A DNA stretch of 63,065 nucleotides, filler included, from Octopus bimaculoides (lineage: Eukaryota): NCBI RefSeq assembly GCF_001194135.2. It is 5 parts of 4 records of this genome, joined end to end, with 100 filler letters (N's around TTAATTAATTAA, not from the genome) between each part and the next. Parts side by side here need not be neighbours in the genome. Positions count along the whole stretch, not along the records: positions 46,805 to 60,068 come from NC_068982.1; 4 more parts are not named here. One strand, 5' to 3'. The first letter of the stretch is position 1. Each line of letters begins with the position of its first letter. This document shows, in pieces, positions 46,805 to 60,168 of this stretch. The notes under the pieces were generated by a model. The model had not been told where the DNA came from, did not search any database, and saw only the letters and a program-made list of their open reading frames with translations. The position numbers and the translations under genes were made by a program.

Positions 46805-47150
46805 TACACTTTCAGCGCACCTACCGCCACTACTAACTTGGTCACCCAGATAGCGGAAGCTATGAACTACCTCTAGTTTTTCTCCCTGGAATGAGACAGA
46901 AGTTGTTTCCTGTTTGTTTACAGTGTTTATTGCACCTGAACATCTGCCACATACAAAAACTAAATTCCTAGTTAACCTGCCTTTGATATTGCTGCACCTC
47001 TTATGTGTCCATACCTTGCACTGGGTACATCTTATAGAGTTACTACCTACTCCTTTTCTACATATTGAGCAGGGCCATCTACCTGAAGGGGTTTGTGTTT
47101 TATCTACCTTCCTACTTATTTTAGCTAAATCTGATATTCTGGACACTTTA
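46805..47150 (-). mobile_element. RTE-clade LINE ORF2 fragment with C4HC3 PHD finger
   Basis: WPCSICRKGVGSNSIRCTQCKVWTHKRCSNI...FVCGRC followed by EKLEVVHSFRYLGDQVSSGG. Confidence 0.85.
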
Positions 47151-47230
47151 ATATATTAGGAATCTAAGTTACACCAGATGGACTATATATGCATATAGAA
47201 TCCTACAGACATCAGGAAACATCTACAGGT

Positions 47231-48159
47231 GGGTACGAATTTCTTTTTTGTTGATCAGAGTAAATTTCAATACATTTACCCACATGATTTTCACTAAGAA
47301 AATAGCTTAGATTTTTTGCGTGGAATCAAGTGCCCTGACCTCCTAATATGCTGCAGATCCCTTATTTTTGTTCAGAAAAGTGGTTGGGGGTGGGCATCCC
47401 GAATCAATGGAAATTTTTTTTTTTCCGTTGAATGAATTATAATGATCTCCTAATATGCAACAAACCCCAATATTTTGATCCGGGAAACAAAGAAAGTGGG
47501 GGAAGAACCCGCGGAAATTTCACCCCCGCCATTTTCAAATATTCTTTGCTGTGTTTTTCTTTACCCATATTTTTAGATAACATTTCGCAGAAATACATAT
47601 GAGAGATTTGTTTTTCAAATCTATTCTGCAATCTGGAATTATTATATATTATCACGGATATAATTATCCAGTGATTTTAAGAGGTATGAAAAAGATATTT
47701 TGTTTAATATTATACTTTTACTTGTTCCACACACATACACAACTTCTTATGTGTTTTCCTAGATGACTTCTTTATCATTCTTTCTCTCTCCACAGACTTC
47801 GTTACCACTAACTTCTATAACCTCTGCATTTTCACTTATTCTTTTCAGTATTCTTTTCAAACTAGTTTGGATATTCAATCTAATGTAATCCACACTATCT
47901 TGAAAACGTATTTCTGCAATATGTCGTCTAAAATTATGGGTAAAGAAAGAAACAGCAAAAAAATTTGAAAATGGGGTGGGGGTCCGAGGGTTCTCAACAC
48001 TCCCCTCCTCCACCCCGTTTTCCGGACTAAAAAAAAAGGTAATTCATTCAACGGAAAAAAAAAAAATTCCCAATGATTCCGGGATTCCACTTTTTTTCCG
48101 AACAAAAATAAGGGATTTGTGGTTAAAAATATCGAAATTTACCGATTTAAATTCGTCCC
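47231..48159. mobile_element. Non-autonomous element with long imperfect terminal inverted repeats
   Basis: Three colinear inverted blocks: gggtacgaattt..gtaaatttcaatac; atcccttatttttgttcagaaaa; ttttttccgttgaatgaatta. Their reverse complements lie at 48037-48159. Confidence 0.7.
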
Positions 48160-48754
48160 AAAAATGCAGCGAAGACATTTCTGCTTATCATGACCTGCGA
48201 GTTGGGGGTTCTTGTTTATTTAGACTAAAGTCGTTGGTTAGTTGAGTTGATGGTTAGACAACGAGTGAGTTTACGCATACATGAACGGACACACGTATGA
48301 GTGTGTGTGTACACATATGTATGCAGGTATGTGTAGGTACTGGCTGGCATAAGCTTCACAACTAATCTAGGAAGAACAGACTGTAGTCCCACGACTAGTT
48401 TAGTGTTTAAACATGAAAATATATCCGCTGTCTTCCAGTAGTGTAGCTAGAGTGTGTGTCGCCCGAGGTAGCCCCGGAGTTTGCGACTCCACACCACTCA
48501 AAAGTGCTGTCCCTGTAAAAGCGCCGACAGGGACGGACTACCCAACTCTTCTCCACTTTATTTATGAAGTGGACCCTATCGTCGCTAAATTTACTCCGAG
48601 CATTAAACTATTCAGGTTACAAGAATATCTGATTTGTCGAAAGGGTTGTTTTTTCCAAATCCTTTTTTATTTCCCACACTCAATAGGGTTAACACTCACG
48701 CTTGGGGTTATACACCACTCATGCGCGCTCTCGTGTGTAAGTGCGTGTAATACG

Positions 48755-48808
<54 letters not shown>

Positions 48809-49124
48809 GAGAGAGAAGAAGAGAGTTGGTTATAGATTGGCAATGTTTTTGAAAATACCGTTTTAATCTGCTTTTTATTGTATGTCATATTTTTCCCTTT
48901 TTAAATCAAGGAAAGAAAAGACTAGTGATGGTAACGTTAAAATATTCGTGATGGAGAATTTTGCAGCCTTTAGTTTCACTCTTCCATCCTTTTTGTTGAA
49001 ATGCCACTGAGGTTAACATTGCTTTTCATAATTCTAAGTTGATAAAATGATTATCAGTAATATCAATGTGTTACAATTGAAATAATTGTTGGATATTAAA
49101 ACTAAAAAGATAATTTTACAGTAG

Positions 49125-49143
49125 TTTATTTAACTTCTTTATT
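49125..49143 (-). terminator. Two AATAAA polyadenylation signals downstream of the phosphorylase stop
   Basis: Plus-strand tttatt at 49138-49143 and 49125-49130, about 50 and 63 nt past the TGA. The region is AT-rich, so chance is possible. Confidence 0.5.
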
Positions 49144-49192
49144 AATATTCTTTTGTAAATGATGAACATTTATATAAACCAATCATTTAAGA

Positions 49193-51688
49193 TCAATAGA
49201 ATTTTGTTTGAAGTAAGTCAGCACTCCATATGTGAGCTGCATATTCTTTGATAGCTCGATCACTTGAGAATTTTCCACAACAGGCTATGTTCAACAGGGA
49301 TTTTTTTAGCCATTCTTTAGTATTATTATAAAGATTTTCTACATCATCTTGAGCTCTAATGTAATCTTCATAATCTTCAAGAATCAAATAATGATCGCAG
49401 TGGTATAAACTATCAAAGATTTCTATAAATAGAGTGGGATTGTCAGGACTGAAGTAGCCATCTTTAATCATGTCCATTGCCCTTCTTAACTCATCATTAC
49501 TATGATAATGGCGTGATGCTGTATAACCGGATGATCTCAAATTATTAACCTCTTCAACGCAAAGACCGAAAATAAACATATTTGTTTTTCCAACTTCTTC
49601 AGCTATTTCGACATTGGCACCATCCATTGTACCTATTGTTAATGCCCCATTGGCCATAAATTTCATGTTTCCTGTACCAGAAGCTTCTGTTCCAGCTGTT
49701 GAAATCTGTTCACTAAGATCTGTTGCAGGTATAATTTTCTCAGCCAAAGACACAGAATAATTTTCCAAATAAACTACTTTAAGTTTGTTTCCTATATCAA
49801 CGTCATTGTTGATAACCTTTGCAACATTATTGATAAGCTTTATAATAAGTTTAGCCATCCTGTAGCCGGGAGCAGCTTTACCACCAATTATGACGGTACG
49901 AGGAACAACAAATTTCTTTTCGTATTTAATACGACAGTATTTTGTAACTATATGAAGACAGTTCAGTAGCTGGCGTTTGTATTCGTGTATACGTTTTACA
50001 TGGACATCAAATAACGATGCTATGTTTATATTAATAAGATATTTCTCTTTTATATATTCTGCCATTCTTTTTTTGTGTTCCATTTTGACTTCCATTAAAT
50101 CCCTTAAAATATGGCCATCATGCTCAAATTTTCTAAGGTCTCTTAAATGGCATAACTCTGTTATCCACGCATCTCCAATTCTTCCCGAAATCAAATCTGC
50201 AAGACATGGATTACTCTGAAGTATCCACCGCCTTGGTGATATTCCATTGGTTACATTTTGAAATTTGTGTGGCATCATCTCGTAGAAGTCTTTAAATAGT
50301 TGTTGTTTTAGTAAATTTGAGTGTAATGCGGCTACGCCATTAACTGCATGCGAACCGACTATACACAAGTAAGCCATATTTACTTTTTTGTAAGGCTCTT
50401 CTTCGAATATGGACAGTCTCTTTATTCGATCATCATCATTCGGCCAAATTCTTGCAACTTTTTCTAAATGTAAATGATTGATATGGTAAATAAGCTGCAG
50501 ATGTCTCGGAAGTAATGTTTCCAATAATGTAACTGGCCACCGTTCAAGAGCTTCTGGCATCAATGTGTGGTTTGTATAAGCAAAAACATTGCAACTAATA
50601 TCCCATGCATCATCCCAGTCCATGCATTCATCATCAACAAGTATTCTCATAAGTTCTGGTATTGCCATTCCAGGATGGGTATCATTCAATTGTATTGCTA
50701 CTTTTTCTGGTAATTGATAAAACATGTCTCTTCCCCTTCTTTGTCTTCCATATTTATCAGCTTTGAATCTTCTTATAATATCTTGTAAAGTTGCTGCTAC
50801 TAGAAAATATTCTTGTTTGAGACGCAATTCTTGTCCTTCGAAGAAAGAGTCATTTGGATAAAGAACACTAGAAATATTTTCAGCTAAGTTTCTTTCTATA
50901 ACTGCTCTGATGTAATCTCCGTTATTGAAAAATTGCAGCTGAAATTCTTTGGTACATCTAGCTGACCACAATCGCAGAGTATTTACTCTGTTGTTCTTGT
51001 AGCCAGGAATTGGATAATCATAAGGTGTTGCAATAACATTGTGTGTGTCCAGCCACTGAAAGCGACCTTCTATAACTTCCACTCTTCCTCCAAAACGAAC
51101 GGGAATTCGGTGTTCGGGTCGGGATTTTTCCCATGGGTTCCCGTATTCTAACCATTCATCTGCCGATTCACATTGCCATCCATTGTTGATTTTTTGTGTA
51201 AATATTCCATAATTATAACGAATTCCGTATCCATATCCTGTTACGCCAACTGTAGCCATGGAATCCATATAACAAGCTGCTAATCGACCAAGACCACCAT
51301 TTCCTAATCCTGCCTCCTCTTCTATTTCTATGAGATTGCTCAACTTCAGATTCATTTGTCTCAAAGCTTCTTCGTTAGAATACATATTTCCAAGACATAA
51401 CATGGCATTCTCTAAAAATTTTCCCATATAAAATTCCATAGAAAGATAATAAACCCTTTTTGGATCAGTATCATAATTAAATTGCTGAGTTCTGATCCAA
51501 CGTCCGACAAGTTGATCTTTAACAGAATGGGCTAAGGCTACATAATAATCTCTTCTGGTGGCTACATTTCTATCTTTCATACATGTGAAGTGAAGATGTC
51601 GATTGAAGGATTTTTTAATGTTTTCTGTACTCATCTCGTCTGCCAGCCCTGTCATTCCACACAGTGTAATTTGCTGTTGCAAAGGCAT
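49193..51688 (-). CDS. PYG: Glycogen phosphorylase (GT35, PLP-dependent), metazoan type, intronless, 831 aa
   Basis: Uninterrupted ORF colinear with animal phosphorylases: [57 protein letters not shown] and [11 protein letters not shown] (PLP Lys = K676, nt 49661-49663). ATG context aacATG with an in-frame TAA 15 nt upstream. Confidence 0.98.
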
Positions 51689-51840
51689 GTTGTTGTTTTT
51701 TTACTAAAGTTTTCTATTATACTTTTGTTATTAGAGTTTCTTTTCCTTTAGATTTTGTCTAAACACTCGAAATATGTAGCTCGGTAAAGTCAGGATGTTT
51801 CTTTTTTGATACTTTCAACATGGCTATAAATTACATTGTA

Positions 51841-51848
51841 TTACGTCA
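51841..51848. promoter_or_regulatory. CRE-like element TTACGTCA about 150 bp upstream of the phosphorylase ATG
   Basis: Octamer seen directly; function is inference only. Confidence 0.25.
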
Positions 51849-52169
51849 CTGCACGGGTTTGCATGACCATTTTATGACATAATATTAATGGTGGATATAG
51901 ATTCTGCTTTCTACCTTTATTTAAGCAAACATGTTCAGCTTTCGTTATAATAAAAAAAATAATTAAAGGCTCCACCTCTTCGATTCCTACTTTAAAGTGG
52001 GAAATATAAAATCCTAAGGTATATTATGTGATAATGTCACTTAATCGTATAATTCATCTATACAATAATGATCCAGTTTTCTTTATTTTAGGGTCCAGTG
52101 TAGATTGTTTAGGCAATCAGGATTTTATATGTAATATGACTGTGAATTCAAATTTGCTACTGGCAAATT

Positions 52170-52760
52170 GTTTCTATTTCAGTTTTATACTTGGTCAATT
52201 CACTTCACTGTTGGGGCTATTCACGAATAGTGCAGGCAAAATCTACATTCTCAAAATTGTGTAACATTTTGAGAAACCGTATTCCGAGCATGAAGGCTAA
52301 TACCTGTATATTGAACTGCTATGTCTACCTTGTGTTTATGTACTTCTGTAAAGCTTGGTCTATAACATCAGAAATGAGAAGGTGCTTAGAGAGCTGTGAA
52401 ATGTGGTTCTTAAGGGAAATATTGAGGATAGCATAGACAAATAAAGTGTCTAATGAAGAAGAGATGACCCGGGTTGCGGTAAATAGGAAACTGCTTCCTG
52501 AGATAAGGGCCAAACAACTGAGATTTTTCGGTCATGTGATAAGGAAAGAGGGTCTGAAGAAGTAAGCGATGACCGGAAAGATTGGAGGGAAAAGAAGTAA
52601 ACGAAGGAGAAGGATGATATGGATGTCAAGCTTGATGAACTGGTTGCAAAGAGGCATTAAACATCAGGAATTGGAACTGCTACAGAAAACAAAGAACAGA
52701 GAATTGTGGCAGAACATGATCGCCTTTGTCCTACATTCTAGATATGACACTTAAAGAAGT
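52170..52760 (+). mobile_element. RTE (BovB-like) LINE 3' fragment
   Basis: AKSTFSKLCNILRN...CLESCEMWFLREILRI...RAKQLRFFGHVIRKEGL...TGKIGGKRSKRRRRMIW...NRELWQNMI. Confidence 0.88.
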
Positions 52761-52899
52761 TATTGGGGTTACGTACGAATTTACCTGGGAATGCTGGCTG
52801 CAATTAATTGTATATAAATTCTAGGTGGTAATTTTTATTTCACATTTGTATCATGCCATTGACATTTCTGCGGGTTTGAAGTCACCCAAAGTTACGGTA

Positions 52900-53555
52900 C
52901 TTCTTTCCTTTTCATCTGCCACTTGTATTTTTAGCATCAATGCCTCTGAAGATGATATAGTTCGACAATCATCTTAATCTTCTCCTCAATTTATTATTTC
53001 TTTCGTAAACAGGTCTTCGAATTCTGTTTTGTCAGCGTCAAAATACCCACTTCTTCGCATCTTCTATGATGATCGAGTATCGTATAATAGCGGAAAAACA
53101 CATAAACGGTATTCAGATTCAAAATTGACGAATTAGTCAGTGAATTGTGCTTTTGTCGACTCTTCGTTAACCACATCATCTTTATACCTTCAACATTGCA
53201 AAACATCATTGAATTTACGGAACTTTACTGGTAATGGTAAAAATTATTTTCATCCCTTTAACTGAATGTAACCCAGTATAATCCATCTTTGAATAGTGCT
53301 TTTTCGATATTCACCCTATCAACTAAAACAGATTTCACCCAGAGTTACAATACTTCTTTTCTTCTCATCTGCCACTTGTATTCTTAGCATCAATGTCTCT
53401 GAAGATGATACAGTCCGACAAAAACACATAAATGGTGTTCAGATTCAAAATCGACGAATTAGTTAGTAAAATGTGCTTTTGTCGACTCTTCGTTAACCAC
53501 ATCATCTTTATACCTTCAACATTGCAAAACATCATTGAATTTACGGAATTTTAAT
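52900..53555. repeat. Local direct duplication of an ~200-bp segment; the first copy carries an extra ~130 bp
   Basis: tcatctgccacttgtat...catcattgaatttacggaa occurs at about 52912-53222 and 53364-53548. Confidence 0.85.
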
Positions 53556-53578
53556 CCGATGCAGTTGCTGAAATTATA

Positions 53579-54425
53579 GAGGGTGTTCGGGCTAAACTTG
53601 ACATTTTGCTTAAAAGGTAAAGAAAACACAACATCCCATCTTAAAATATACATTAAAAAATATCAACTAGATTAAACTGGGAGATAACAGTTTACTCACA
53701 TTAACCGCCCTCAGCTTCCACTACGGTCTCAAGACGACTCCGTTTCTCATTGTATGCTTGGGAAGATCTTCGAACACCTTGATCTTGGCCCAGCTCGACC
53801 TTGGTGTCGTAGGCAGAGCGGTTGGTGTCTTTCACACTCAGTAATCTTTAAAATTATAATCGGAGGAATAAGGAAGCTAGAAATTGGGACTGATGAAATG
53901 GTAGAAACTCTCTGACAACCACTTATGATCTTTCAGGAGGTATGGGAACCGAATCCTGCTGTTATACATATGGCTTTCCAACAGCAACCCCCTCTGGTCA
54001 GAGATTGACCACTGTCTTCAGCAGCTTCACATAGCCGTCTGAAAATAACCTAAGGTTCTGTTCAAAGGTGTGGGGATGAATTCCGACGCGCGGGCACAGT
54101 CAGAACGCCTGCTGTGTCCCAGTTGGTCACGACTTCGCAGTCTCCGTTGCCTCTATGCATATCATATCTTATAGCTTTTACAGTGTACACAGAGCATTGA
54201 ACAGCAGTCATAACGTTGGCATTTTGACGCCCGATGCAAATCATGATGTCACAGGTAACTCTTCCAATATTCAGATGGCTTCTAGTTCTCCATCTCAGCT
54301 AACTTTTTGCCAATTCCAACTTTAATGTTCATGCTCTCCAATGCCGCTCACTGCCCACCATACATCAAAATGTTCTCGAAAAAAGGAGACATAAAAAAAT
54401 CGTCAAATTTAGCTCGAACACCCTG
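53579..54425 (-). mobile_element. Deleted maT/Tc1-like transposon with ~29-bp TIRs and TA TSD
   Basis: TA|gagggtgttcgggctaaacttgacatttt ... aaaatcgtcaaatttagctcgaacaccctg|TA. Minus-strand GKPYV*QQDS...KWLSESFYHFISPNF...SSDYNFKDY. Confidence 0.85.
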
Positions 54426-54736
54426 TACAGGGCCAAACTGAGTAAGATAATACTAGTCACTCAACAAATATACATTAGAGTGTATTCATAAAAAAGGGAA
54501 AGCACTTGCCTGTTTGTTATGAACATCTACTGTTTTTGTTACAATATTGACTCAGTTTCCTCTTTTCAGGTAATATTTTCCTAAAATTTATCTTTCCCTC
54601 TATTTATCTTCTGCGTACATACTTGCCTTCTCTAAATTCTTTTTCCAGCCATTCTATGTGATTTTATCATTAGCACTTCAAGAATGGGTATAGTGGCAGA
54701 CACGTTTAAATTGGGGTATTGAGAATTTGTGACATT

Positions 54737-55792
54737 TGTAGTGAAACCTCTCTCTCGGGCATTCAATCACAAATGATAACGACGCGGCTAACATCTAGCC
54801 TTCGGCTGCCTTGGACCCTTGTGTCCACCACCCTGATTGGTTCTTATTTGCGCGGCAATTATCACCAGTTCTGTTTCGCGCCAGGGTGCATACCATCCAA
54901 TCGTGGCCTTCAGATAAGGTCACGTGAAAGAGTGTTTTTCTGCTGTTCCGGTGAGCCCCTGTTCATCTATAAATAAGCCTGCTCCAACTACGCCAGTCGT
55001 CGCGACCACAGACCTTTTCAGGTCTGGTCGTTTGACCACATACCAACCAGCCAGTTTCTAGCGCCGATGTCATCACCACCAATGTACTGTCTACCACAAT
55101 GTCGTCGCCAGCAACACCACCACCAGAGTACACACCAACAACGACAAACGCGGTTTTATCTCGACACTGTATGAGTGGATTATTTCCACCACGAAGTTAA
55201 CAGTCAGAACCAACTTGCGAGAATCTTCTGTACCAGGTAACCGGTCGCAGCATCGACGCTCAACACACACAACATGTGACACCACAGCTCTGCTCTCCGG
55301 CCACAACTTTCTGCGTATGAACATTCTATCTCTTGTGTAACTCTTATACGAACTGGTATTTTCTTTATTATCATTCAGGACGCTTATCTACTGTGTTACA
55401 GACACTCTTTCAATGCTCCGTATTTCTCATTCACACATTATTGTATACACACATATTGTACTCTCACATATTGTACACACACTCTTACTTATACGACGGT
55501 CCGTCATTCATATTGTTGTATACGTACTCTTGTTCACACGAAGGCCTGACTTATGTATTGTGTTATTTATATATGCCGCATGCACGCACACACAGGCACT
55601 TCAGTTTTACTATGTTAATAAACTTGTCTGTCACTCTCTTGTTCCTTTACTGGCACTTGGCTCGCATCTCTCATTGCGAGCCCATTTTATGTCATATATC
55701 ATGTTTTTTGTGTTCGACCGTGCGACGTGTTTAAAGGAGTCATCTTCCACTTCGTCGCCATCTCCTTTGGTTCGCACGGTCGTTCTATTACA
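54737..55792 (+). mobile_element. Candidate solo LTR
   Basis: TGTAG...TTACA ends; flanks CATT/CGTT (3 of 4 match); CCAAT motifs, TATAAATA at 54968, Inr-like ccagtc at 54993 and AATAAA at 55617. Confidence 0.45.
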
Positions 55793-57149
55793 CGTTCATA
55801 CCTGTGCCGGATAGTGGTGTAGTGCTAAAAAAGAATTGCAAATACGCAGCTTGAAAGTGTTTTTTTCAGATGGATATGAGGAGCAACGCAAGAGCAGCAA
55901 ACCTATAAAGTTGTTATGGAAGGCAATGTAAGCTCAGGTAAATATTTTATTAAACTGATTTTAGTGGTAGATGGAAAGTGGTGTAGGTGGGAGCTTCAAC
56001 ACAAAGGACGTCAGTGACAACATCAGTGACTAGCTGACCTTTACATAAATTTAATGAAAATATGATGTAATTCTGTTTACAATTGGCCCCATACTGTCAG
56101 AGGGATATCATGACAAACGGACCATATACCTATACTGTACTATAGACGCAAGCAGCATTTTTTTTTTTATCAGTTTCGATAACAAACCCTACTTCATAAT
56201 GGTGATGTGTAGCTATTTAGGATTTCACACGCTATAAGCAATACAGTACATTAAATGCAATTTTAAAATACCTTGAACCTTTGCATTTGGAGAGAAGTTT
56301 TAAGAGAATTTCCAAACTGGATTCACTATGACATCTTTGGATCTTACTATTCTTGCTTGTGTATCAGTTGCTGAACAATGACACCTTTGTCATGTGAATA
56401 GATAGTCATCCGGTTTCCAGATTGCGACATTCAATTCTTGCAATTGCAACAAATCAAAATGGTCAGGGTCCGGTCTATCATTTTTTGGCATGAAAATATG
56501 CAGTTCTAAATATTTTGCAGGCGACCGCTACGTCAGATTTGTTTAAACGATCTATGATAGTTTCAAGTTGACGTTTCCTTGCGCCCGCGTTTGGTTAAAC
56601 ATTTTTTGCCCATACGAAATTCATATATTCTTATTCAAGTTATCTATCTATTATATCCTTATAAAAAGCAAAGTTTGTTTATTTGTACGTTGAAAACACT
56701 AAATAAAATCAATAATATTTCAGGCTTTTCGTGTCATTTAAATTAATTTGACCATTCCACAGATAACTGTGCACTTATTTTCCAAAAACGGAATGGGGTA
56801 GGGGTGCAGTTGGTGGTGTATTGGCTCCTATTTCTAGCAATCCAGGTACTGTCTATTTCACTGTAATGCTTTTTACAGAGTGGGAAAATACTTCACTCAG
56901 TCCACTTTTAACTTTCTCTGTGTTTTTATCATAAGCACTTCTTTACATTTATTCTTTTTAAGTCGCCGCCGGACCTCTGCTTTCTCTCTGTCTATATGTC
57001 GCTCTCTGTGTCTCTATCTCTCTCACTACCTCCTTCTTCTTCTCTCTCTGGTTGTAAATGTGTCTTTCTCTCTTACTATCTCTACTTCTTTCTCTCTCTG
57101 GAGAAAAATATGTAAGACAGATAGAAAGGAGATTAGCAAGAAAAAACAA

Positions 57150-57743
57150 GTGAGACAATCCTAGCCCCCTAAAACATTACAGTAAATGCCATCAACAAAA
57201 ATCTTACAAATGATCTCTGGAGACAGCCATATCTATAAACCTATCGACAAAGTTGTTGACGTGGACGATGCTGTTCATTATCCTGTTGAATTCCTCATCA
57301 GTCTGGAACCGTCCGGTATGCCGCCATACAATCTTGAATTGAAGAAGGGCGCAGTCACCATGCTTCTCAGAATCTTAGATCAGCTAAGATTGTGCAATGT
57401 ACAGGTATGGCTGTAACTGAACTACAGCCTCACATTATCGAAGCAAAAATTCTCACTGAATATGGTAAGGGAGATATCGTATTTATACCTAGAATAGTTA
57501 ATACCAACAGATGTCCCCTTTCATTTCAAACGATTGCAATTCCCAGTGAGAGTCAGTTACGTAATGACCATTAACAAGTCCCAAAATCAAACATTACAGG
57601 TTGTCGGTTTCCACTTTGAAGATGGCTGGTTCTCACATGGTCAATTGTATGTAGGTTGTTCCAGAATAGGAAACCCACAGAAACTCTTCATATATGCTCC
57701 AAAGAAAAAAGTTAAAAACATTGTATATATTGAAGTTCTGTAA
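57150..57743 (+). mobile_element. Helitron PIF1-type helicase C-terminal fragment (frameshifted)
   Basis: ILAP*N, YPVEFLISLEPSGMPP..L.LKKGA..MLLR.LD...LCN, QFPVRVSYVMTINKSQNQTL and FSHGQLYVGCSR...KNIVYIEVL*. Confidence 0.9.
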
Positions 57744-58049
57744 ATGTTTTATAGTTTTCATACAATACATTTCTCTATTAATATCTATATTACTTTCTGT
57801 ATTTAGATACTATTAATAAATTTTCAAAATTGCTATTTATCCCAGTGCCCCAATAATTACAAATATAAACCTGAATTTGTAAACTGGGTTAAATAACTAT
57901 AGATTTCTCAATAGTTCAGCGTAGGTACTTTGTTTTTCGTTGACCTTTTAGCTTTATGTTAACATCCGCTGAGCAGCTGATTTCCACAATTGTACACGGT
58001 TTCCTTTCTCTATCTTAAATCACTATGTCAGGTCGATCATGTTTACGTT

Positions 58050-59722
58050 TTATTAAGGTTTTCACTGGAACATTCCATCAGTACTCCTTCTTATTCAAAG
58101 TGACTATAGCTTCTATCATACTGTGGGTTCTTTTTTCTTTGGCTTTAAGGTTATCCTTCTGACGGATCTCATTATACAGTGTCTTAGCTACAGCATCATG
58201 TCTCTTCGGTATATAGTGTAGTGATGATATTTTCGGACAACTGCTTATTATGTGGGTGATATCTTCGGTGTTAACTACACAAAGTCTGCCCTGGTTATTA
58301 TATTTTGATATTTTGCCTGCGTCTCTGCTCCTTTTGTGCATCGGGTATTTGGTTGATATTTCCTGTTCCTAGATTGCACCCCCCCCCCTCAAAGTGGGAG
58401 TTAGTAATCCGGTTGTTAGTCCATGATAGACTGCTTTGATGATCAATGTTACTATCATCTCGGAGCTTTCTGCTAACATAGTCGTGCATTGTCTTCTGGT
58501 CATATACGCTCATCCTTTCATCTGATTATATGTTGCGGTAAAATCGTGCGATTTCTTTGAGCAGGTATTTAAGGTTATCAGATAATGAAGGAATGCTGCT
58601 CAAGGAACTGCATTCCAAGACTTATGATGTTATCAGTCTCATGTATGCAAACTTGGTCAAGAGATACACTTTGACACTTGGTGGTTAAAAGATGTTGCCG
58701 AAGGAAAATTCAAAGGCAGTTTGGAACGATGTCAAACCTCTGCCGCCTTGTTTTCGTTTTAGGTAAAGGAGGTCTACTTCACTGTTGATGTGGAAATTAC
58801 ATGTGCTTGTTAGTATCTTCCGGGTTTTCACATCAATGAATCAGATCTCATCAAGCGTCCAATCAAGCAGCTCAAATGTTGGTATGAGTACTGGCACTGC
58901 AGACACATTGTGGGCAACCGTTTTATTGAATGCAGACGTCCAAATTTTCTTTATTCGGCTGTAATATTCTTTAGTGACACATGTTTTACTACAGGTGACA
59001 TTGTAAGGTACGTTTTCATCCACCCCTAGGTACCTGTAACATTCCTCATCAGATATAGGGGAAACAGTTAGGTCATTGATGGAAATGTTGCTTGTCTGGT
59101 TTATAGCTTTCCCTCTTTTCACAACCATATAACAACTTTTATCCTGATCAGACTCCAGCCCTATATCCTTTGAGAATGTTGTAATCATGTCGAGGCTCTT
59201 TTTCATCTCGTGCATATTCTTTGCATATAGTTTTAAGTCATCCACAAAGAAACAGTATGGAATTATGGTATTTCTGTTTCCTTATGAACCAGTGAGATAT
59301 CCTTCAGATTTCCTTAACATGAATGACAAGGGGTTTACAGAAAGTATAAACAACATCACAGAGAGGCTGTCCCCTTGGAGTATGCCTCTACAATACTGTA
59401 TTCTATTAGTGATAATACAGTCATTCCTTGTGTTTAATTTCAAGATGATAAGTCACGATGAAGTCAGATCAGCTATGGCTTTGACTATTCTCACTGGAAC
59501 TTTAGCAAGTTGAAGGGCTTCTAGCATCCATGAGTGGGGAACAGAGTCAAAGGCTTTCTTGTAGTCAAACCACATTGAAATTTGGTTCCTTCTATATTCC
59601 CGCTCCTCTGACATTGCAGTTTTGCTTATTAACAATTACTCAGCACATCCCCAGACTCCCTTCTTCCCAGTTGCTTGTTTTTCTGTGATGATGTTACTGT
59701 ATAGGAAAGTTGGTTATACATC
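58050..59722 (-). mobile_element. R4/Dong-like LINE, RT to knuckle region, decayed
   Basis: WFDYKKAFDSVPHSWMLEAL, VDDLKLYAKN and EDITHIISSCPKISSLHYIPKRHDAVAKTLY; same lineage as 23100-26000. Confidence 0.88.
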
Positions 59723-59765
59723 ATTAGATGTACACCTGACTTTCCTATATAAAATTTAAAAAATA

Positions 59766-60063
59766 TATAACGGAACGCTGAACTCCAGACTATCAACTTA
59801 AACAACATTTATTCAGGTGGTAAATATATACATCTTTAGCTCTTGTTGTTACAGCTCTTCTATGTGTGTGAGCATAGTTGTTGGGACGTTGTTATGTAGA
59901 TGTAAGCGAGCTGTCGAGTGTAAGTCCGAAAGATGGAGAGTGACAACTAAACACGTCCATGCTCTATTGCTGGCCATCAAGAAAGAGAATGAATTGAGCG
60001 GGAACGCTTGGTTGTTTAATTCCACGCATGCGTGAGACTACGCATGCGCACGGCGTTACTACA
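59766..60063 (-). mobile_element. Candidate short solo LTR (~300 bp)
   Basis: Minus strand begins TGTAGTAAC, carries gcgcatgcg motifs and AATAAA, and ends GTTATA (possibly decayed GTTACA). No TSD found. Confidence 0.4.
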
Positions 60064-60168
60064 ACTGCNNNNNNNNNNNNNNNNNNNNNNNNNNNNNNNN
60101 NNNNNNNNNNNNTTAATTAATTAANNNNNNNNNNNNNNNNNNNNNNNNNNNNNNNNNNNNNNNNNNNN

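Follow-up and report, generated by a model that had tools for sequence, protein, structure and literature searches.

The subject of this report is a glycogen phosphorylase gene of Octopus bimaculoides, here called copy A, which occupies positions 49193-51688 of a 63,065-nucleotide stretch of that genome (the window); the piece examined covers positions 46805-60068 (13.3 kb) of this window. Copy A is most likely a retrogene, old and selectively maintained; it forms part of a local pair within a wider, probably cephalopod-wide, family of intronless phosphorylase genes. The history that we prefer, with a probability of about 0.8, is that copy A is a functional isozyme gene derived from a processed copy of the multi-exon gene for the canonical cephalopod phosphorylase, that this copy was made before octopods and decapodiforms split, and that a later inverted duplication produced the A/B pair. 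The initial annotation of this DNA had proposed an old retrogene. Its age, its lack of introns and its maintenance are upheld, but the gene is not a single copy, being half of a head-to-head pair that is accompanied by a third lineage.

49193-51688, minus strand: glycogen phosphorylase copy A, coding sequence in a single exon (open reading frame list, Pfam and TIGR matches, residues, dN/dS)

The open reading frame (ORF) is intact and intronless, as had been claimed. It starts with ATG, spans 2496 bp including the stop codon and encodes 831 amino acids (aa), and the second-longest ORF listed for the 13.3-kb piece encodes only 140 aa. An identical protein is encoded at CM046602.1:87233835-87236330 in the chromosome-scale assembly (GCA_001194135.2), and a RefSeq model for the gene exists under the label "glycogen phosphorylase, brain form-like". 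The PF00343 match of the product extends from profile position 1 to 712 (of 713) and scores 1073 bits (cut-off 27), and its TIGR02093 score of 1162 bits (cut-off 553) compares with 1192 bits for the canonical octopus enzyme; in other words, copy A encodes a full-length GT35 glycogen phosphorylase above the curated family cut-offs. It is approximately 62% identical, over its full length, to the solved structures 5iko, 1fa9 and 1z8d. Residues 4-824 align with human brain phosphorylase (5iko) without a frameshift, and the same span aligns with the solved human and rabbit enzymes without consequential gaps. Both termini are shortened relative to the canonical octopus enzyme, in agreement with the initial annotation, the N-terminus by 8 residues and the C-terminal tail by approximately 14.

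A search for a multi-exon parent had been proposed, and it was successful, copy A not being the sole phosphorylase of the genome. With the canonical abalone enzyme as the query, a canonical Octopus phosphorylase of 850 aa was recovered (XP_014774569.1 in O. bimaculoides and XP_029634504.1 in O. sinensis), which is 77-78% identical to other mollusc phosphorylases. In O. vulgaris and O. sinensis its gene extends over approximately 42 kb, with at least 17 coding exons. In all three species it occupies another chromosome than the intronless genes: it is found on the 147.8-Mb chromosome of O. bimaculoides, as against the 192.5-Mb chromosome that carries copy A; on CM016862.1 of O. sinensis, as against CM016860.1; and on OX597817.1 of O. 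vulgaris, as against OX597815.1. A candidate multi-exon parent is therefore available, and copy A displays two traits of a retrogene, being intronless where the parent bears introns and lying away from the parental locus. The presumed parent and copy A have in common the enzyme family, the domain layout, the lysine that binds pyridoxal phosphate (PLP), the catalytic and AMP-site residues, and Thr14 (residue numbering is that of rabbit muscle phosphorylase). Apart from gene structure and length, they differ in being only about 60% identical and in rate, the canonical enzyme evolving 3.6 times more slowly.

Copy A has an ortholog in O. sinensis (XP_036356236.1), which is 98% identical and likewise intronless, and another in a third octopod, represented by the sequencing runs SRR11869385/390/391/394, where a single exon shows 89% amino-acid and 93% nucleotide identity; the contigs of this species are L005 for its copy A and L012 for its copy B. 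The O. vulgaris model of copy A (CAI9717427.1, P0122) has 736 aa, begins at O. bimaculoides residue 96 and is 98% identical. Copy B itself is an intronless paralog of 835 aa (XP_052834373.1 in O. bimaculoides and XP_036356237.1 in O. sinensis), which is 71% identical to copy A and lies 23.9 kb from it on the same chromosome in a head-to-head (divergent) orientation. This arrangement is kept in O. sinensis with a spacing of 15.3 kb, and copy B has also been placed on an O. vulgaris chromosome. Contamination and assembly artefact are ruled out by the synteny of the locus between O. bimaculoides and O. sinensis, both assembled to chromosome scale, and by the placement of copy B on a chromosome of O. 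vulgaris. Together with the canonical gene, the two intronless ones bring the octopus total to three phosphorylase genes.

The third lineage, C, is also intronless and is 68-70% identical to A and B; its sources are an ENA contig of 190 kb and two sequencing runs. The samples concerned are probably cephalopod; their divergence pattern and their absence from the annotated Octopus proteomes would make them decapodiform. Copy A is approximately 60-62% identical to every canonical animal phosphorylase, and all three lineages are only about 60% identical to any of them, whereas the canonical enzymes are 72-80% identical among themselves across phyla. The three form a clade with a neighbour-joining bootstrap of 100% (82% for A+B). 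All of them lack one residue near position 590, and they share replacements at 20 sites where every canonical enzyme sampled has the same residue. Copy B resembles copy A in its lack of introns, its chromosome, its membership of the same fast clade and its rate, its loss of N284 and its upstream candidate cAMP-response element (CRE). It differs in the N-terminal peptide, where KRRITIRG (of the R-R-x-T type) keeps the basic context of the phosphorylation site and copy A reads QQQITLCG, and in lacking the 3-residue insertion that copy A carries after position 20.

The purifying selection that the initial annotation had postulated is borne out by the substitution pattern. The ratio of nonsynonymous to synonymous divergence (dN/dS) of copy A is 0.11-0.12 between O. 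bimaculoides and O. sinensis and 0.19-0.31 against the third octopod; it is 0.23-0.25 for copy B and 0.05 for lineage C, and the synonymous divergence (dS) between the paralogs is saturated. The coding sequence of copy A is 98.0% identical in O. bimaculoides and O. sinensis, against 94.1-94.6% for its 1-kb flanks. By these measures A, B and C are maintained protein-coding genes under purifying selection and not pseudogenes, and the dN/dS values argue that copy A is functional. In a relative-rate test, 187 unique changes were counted in copy A and 52 in the canonical octopus enzyme (p ~1e-18), and the A/B/C clade as a whole evolves at approximately 3.6 times the canonical rate, A and B being equal.

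In the third octopod, both intronless copies evolve approximately 3 times faster than those of O. bimaculoides. Its copy A (L005) carries H377Q, Y573H and D339E and its copy B (L012) carries H571N and Y90N; despite these replacements at catalytic and PLP-pocket sites, the intronless frames are intact in all four runs. This fast evolution could reflect relaxation, or an altered function, in the lineage of this species.

The position of the clade among animal phosphorylases was examined in several ways. Neighbour-joining trees (Kimura and gamma distances) recovered the A/B/C clade, with backbone bootstraps of 6-38% and the clade drawn to the base near the vertebrates; because long-branch attraction makes such a backbone unreliable, maximum-likelihood (ML) topology tests were used instead. 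Fixed placements were compared for 20 taxa and 843 sites with custom likelihood code, using a Gonnet-derived matrix, empirical frequencies and four gamma categories. Independent retropositions, with A+B joined to the octopods and C to the decapodiforms, fall 335 log-likelihood (lnL) units under the best tree and are rejected. A position as sister to the canonical octopods or to the canonical decapodiform gene falls 51 units under it (Kishino-Hasegawa (KH) p 0.005), and this rejection of positions inside the crown coleoids implies that the clade split off before the canonical octopod and decapodiform genes diverged. The best-scoring placement is as sister to the vertebrates, with a lnL of -15424.7 and a support of 0.51 by resampling of estimated log-likelihoods (RELL), followed by sister to the canonical cephalopods (lnL -15427.4, RELL 0.37, KH p 0.41); when the vertebrate placement is set aside, the cephalopod-sister position is the best (RELL 0.54). 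Each of these two placements joins the stem of the clade, which is 0.415 substitutions per site long, to one of the two longest canonical branches, which is a signature of long-branch attraction. The tree that the initial annotation had recommended is thus compatible with a retrocopy, but as between a vertebrate-sister and a cephalopod-sister position it is not decisive.

Individual residues are suggestive only, but they point to a cephalopod affinity. A strict count of clade-specific characters left too few to be useful (1/4 cephalopod and 2/5 vertebrate states shared), and the criteria were then relaxed. A, B and C share five of the 12 residues diagnostic of cephalopods (Leu9, Thr14, Val125, Val307 and Tyr771) and three of the 15 diagnostic of vertebrates, with 0/12 for six other control groups. 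Within the N-terminal peptide, Ile15 is specific to molluscs and Thr14 and Leu9 to cephalopods, and the intronless copies read (L/M)xxxIT(I/L). No indel joins A/B/C with the canonical cephalopods, the sole informative one being the 1-residue deletion within A/B/C. Among 8000 scored homologs, no member of the clade was found outside the three lineages, and its named members are only from Octopus. Taken with the total absence of introns and the presence of a multi-exon gene in the genome, this distribution makes a single retroposition on the cephalopod stem the most economical history; the one trait from which retroposition would follow as the mechanism is the absence of introns.

Two AATAAA hexamers follow the coding sequence, as had been noted from the sequence, and may serve as its poly(A) signals:

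49138-49143, minus strand: first AATAAA, candidate poly(A) signal, +50 after the stop codon (sequence read)

49125-49130, minus strand: second AATAAA, candidate poly(A) signal, +63 after the stop codon (sequence read)

The first is also present in the 3' flank of the third octopod's copy A (L005); the second is not kept there, where L005 reads AAATACA.

Several observations weigh against a cephalopod retrogene. Searches for an A-rich tract downstream of these signals and for direct repeats of at least 11 nucleotides (nt) flanking both sides of copy A, as a target-site duplication would leave, found neither, just as the initial annotation had reported, so that no direct hallmark of retroposition survives; in an old insertion, with dS saturated between the paralogs, such decay is expected. 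Short public (Logan) contigs with A, B or C were considered as transcripts, but they continue past the AATAAA signals, have microsatellites or repeats at their ends and are therefore taken as genomic, whereas the contigs of the canonical gene end just after AATAAA and are clear transcripts. In the ML comparison, for which the likelihood code was self-written and not a standard package, the vertebrate-sister placement is 2.7 lnL units better than the cephalopod-sister one, and a cephalopod parent is thus not established by ML; deeper placements, 7-15 units under the best tree, are not rejected by the Shimodaira-Hasegawa test. Finally, the excess of cephalopod-diagnostic residues is not significant (Fisher p 0.08).

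Of the other histories, the one that survives best, though we consider it improbable, is that the clade is an ancient DNA-level paralog that arose before the cephalopods, perhaps on the molluscan or bilaterian stem, later lost all its introns (for example, by recombination with cDNA) and disappeared elsewhere. Placements as sister to all molluscs, as sister to the Lophotrochozoa or at the base of the Bilateria are only 5-8 lnL units below the cephalopod-sister tree and are not rejected, and such an origin would suit both the very long stem of the clade and the lost hallmarks of retroposition. However, strong rate acceleration accounts for the long stem without great age, Thr14, Leu9, V307 and Y771 are common to the clade and the canonical cephalopods, and many independent losses would be needed, together with complete intron loss, to leave no other clade member among the homologs scored.

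Far less probable is horizontal acquisition as a processed transcript from another animal, for which the vertebrate-sister topology, with its highest likelihood, and the shared vertebrate-diagnostic residues A179, M692 and A700 might be cited. The edge of that topology is slight by the KH test, and the vertebrates form the longest canonical branch, a classic long-branch pattern; identity to the vertebrate enzymes (62%) is not above that to the mollusc enzymes, and no candidate donor is closer than 63%. Moreover, Thr14 and Leu9 of the N-terminal peptide are specific to cephalopods, and B and C also have an Ile15 of the mollusc type there. It is equally hard to credit that copy A is a non-functional or decaying retropseudogene whose frame is open by chance or youth: the 3.6-fold faster rate, the replacements in the third octopod and the lack of transcripts among the public short contigs would fit decay, but three species have retained an intact 831-codon frame, the next-longest ORF of the piece is far shorter, both paralog lineages are also intact, dN/dS is low with dS saturated between paralogs, and O. 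bimaculoides copy A keeps all its catalytic residues except N284.

If copy A is a retrogene of cephalopod-stem origin, its history would run as follows. An intronless retrocopy of the canonical gene would have been made before the octopods parted from the decapodiforms; amino-acid change would have come in an early burst in the retrocopy; a promoter with CRE-type elements would have been acquired; and, in the octopod lineage, a local inverted duplication of DNA would have given the head-to-head copies A and B.

The predicted properties of the enzyme follow from a comparison with well-studied phosphorylases. All the catalytic and PLP motifs had been thought to be kept, and this holds for K680, the Schiff-base lysine of PLP (in the EASGTGNMK motif), and for the catalytic set, but not for N284 and R649, each of which is Ser in copy A. 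The catalytic and phosphate-site residues that match their rabbit and human equivalents are G134, G135, H377, N484, K568, R569, Y573, K574, E672, S674 and G675, and the PLP pocket retains T676, G677, Y648, W491, Y90 and K568; R649, which is invariant in the canonical enzymes, is S, C or G across A/B/C. Every residue of the AMP site is kept (D42, N44, V45, W67, Q71, Q72, Y75, R193, R242, R309 and R310), with Y196 changed to His and E76 to Asp near it, and so are the phosphoserine-binding R43 and R69, the purine-site pair F285/Y613 and the residues of the glycogen-storage site. Copy A is accordingly predicted to be catalytically competent, to phosphorolyse glycogen with PLP and to respond to AMP. 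Other changes in A/B/C affect Y196 (to H, I or T), L380 (to M), K289 (to Gln in all copies) and a cluster between residues 93 and 128.

Two elements of control are altered. The first is the peptide around the phosphorylation site. In all three canonical cephalopod enzymes (P0166, P0229 and P0162), the otherwise invariant Ser14 is replaced by Thr, and position 9 is Leu rather than Lys or Arg; a search of the literature did not find this cephalopod-wide Thr14/Leu9 change in the regulatory peptide. Copy A has the same Thr14, but where the canonical octopus enzyme retains the basic residues of LRKQITIRG, it alone reads LQQQITLCG (R10Q, K11Q and R16C), so that the residues recognized by phosphorylase kinase, R10, K11 and R16, are not kept. 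Phosphorylase kinase recognizes its site in the muscle enzyme chiefly through K11 and R16; with both replaced, copy A is probably a poor substrate and may largely have escaped the control of that kinase. Copies B and C (P0125, P0008 and P0126) read K/Q-R-R-I-T-I over residues 10-16, which is of the R-R-x-T type, as against the canonical R-K-Q-I-(S/T), and we mention as a lead only that their RRIT resembles a consensus of the protein kinase A (PKA) type.

The second element is the 280s gate loop. N284 is part of this loop and touches glucose in the inhibited T state. In the D283-N284-F285 segment of copy A, D283 and F285 are kept and N284 is changed, to Ser in O. bimaculoides and to Thr in O. 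sinensis; it is Ala in copy A of the third species, in B and in C. The canonical octopus enzyme retains N284, K289 and R649. The replacement of N284 would alter the gating by the 280s loop, and copy A is predicted to be less inhibited by glucose.

Upstream of copy A lies a candidate promoter element, accompanied by a second, degenerate site; comparable octamers precede the other copies:

51841-51848, minus strand: CRE-like octamer TGACGTAA, candidate promoter element, 160 nt upstream of the ATG

51871-51883, minus strand: degenerate second CRE-like site ATTATGTCATAAA, which aligns with the perfect CRE ATTATGACGTCATAAA of paralog B

L002 9747-9754, L004 9865-9872, L005 127-134, L011 116-123 and L012 239-246: TGACGT(C/A)A in other copies

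The octamer at 51841-51848 is the sole match in the 22.5-kb locus of copy A. Each copy of A, B and C has a TGACGT(C/A)A at a distance of 150-260 nt upstream of its ATG, where approximately 0.01 would be expected per 300 bp, and this regularity suggests a conserved cAMP-response element upstream of the whole family. The homology of the second site with the CRE of paralog B, being a short match, is weak. Outside the CRE region, the upstream DNA cannot be aligned between the paralogs, and the short stretch of A-B promoter homology around the CRE fits a duplication at the DNA level.

These features can be combined into a further idea, which is speculative and on balance unlikely: that the clade is a cephalopod-wide isozyme family which predates the separation of octopods from decapodiforms and has had its control rewired towards direct cAMP signalling, with a CRE at every copy, an RRIT site of the PKA type in B and C, covalent control dropped in A and N284 lost. 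Such a family might act as a module that mobilises glycogen in a specialised type of cell, long-stored sperm for instance, without recourse to the phosphorylase-kinase cascade. Literature searches on intronless or retrogene phosphorylases of cephalopods, and on links to testis or sperm, found nothing relevant. One squid paper records only that pygb is expressed in photophores and gives no gene structure.

The surroundings of the gene agree with the earlier description of broken transposon ORFs, since the remainder of the piece consists only of decayed retroelement fragments. Decayed fragments of mobile elements include a PHD-finger ORF at 46805-47146 (minus strand; PF00628, E 1e-6), which is cut by the edge of the piece, and a weak reverse-transcriptase fragment at 58841-59245 (minus strand; PF00078, E 5e-4), which is under the curated cut-off. 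A (CA)26 microsatellite lies at 48755-48806, approximately 390 nt downstream of the stop codon of copy A, and on the upstream side, at 55432-55482, there are 3.3 tandem copies of a 15-nt unit. An interspersed repeat of approximately 180 nt occurs in the flanks of both A (L001 15972-16148 and 20944-21109) and B (L002 22284-22461), its copies being 72-80% identical, and the interval between A and B contains a gene model of 292 aa without a Pfam match (L002 5997-6875, minus strand), 3 kb upstream of paralog B. Scans of the piece for tRNAs and Rfam families found no features.

Mammals and flies provide well-documented cases of retrogenes that encode isozymes of core energy metabolism, and copy A belongs to this known category of retrogene-derived metabolic isozymes rather than to a new kind of system. 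The mammalian PGK2 and PDHA2 are metabolic isozymes encoded by retrogenes and, like copy A, are intronless copies of multi-exon housekeeping genes of energy metabolism that provide an extra isozyme under purifying selection. For PGK2, testis-specific expression and the X-to-autosome logic are established; copy A differs in being far more diverged from its presumed parent and in having been duplicated again locally. A vertebrate genome likewise encodes several differently regulated phosphorylase isozymes (PYGM, PYGB and PYGL), but these arose by DNA or genome duplication, are multi-exon and all keep Ser14 and the kinase-recognition residues, whereas the octopus copies are intronless and copy A lacks that context. 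In the literature searched, no retrogene-encoded isozyme of core energy metabolism has been described for cephalopods.

For annotation, it follows that copy A is to be treated as a real gene and not flagged as a processed pseudogene. The A/B/C clade offers a dated marker, predating the octopod-decapodiform split, for the evolution of gene families in cephalopods. The intronless copies keep the catalytic machinery and change residues that serve hormonal and glucose control in the textbook muscle phosphorylase, and they offer a natural experiment on regulatory rewiring.

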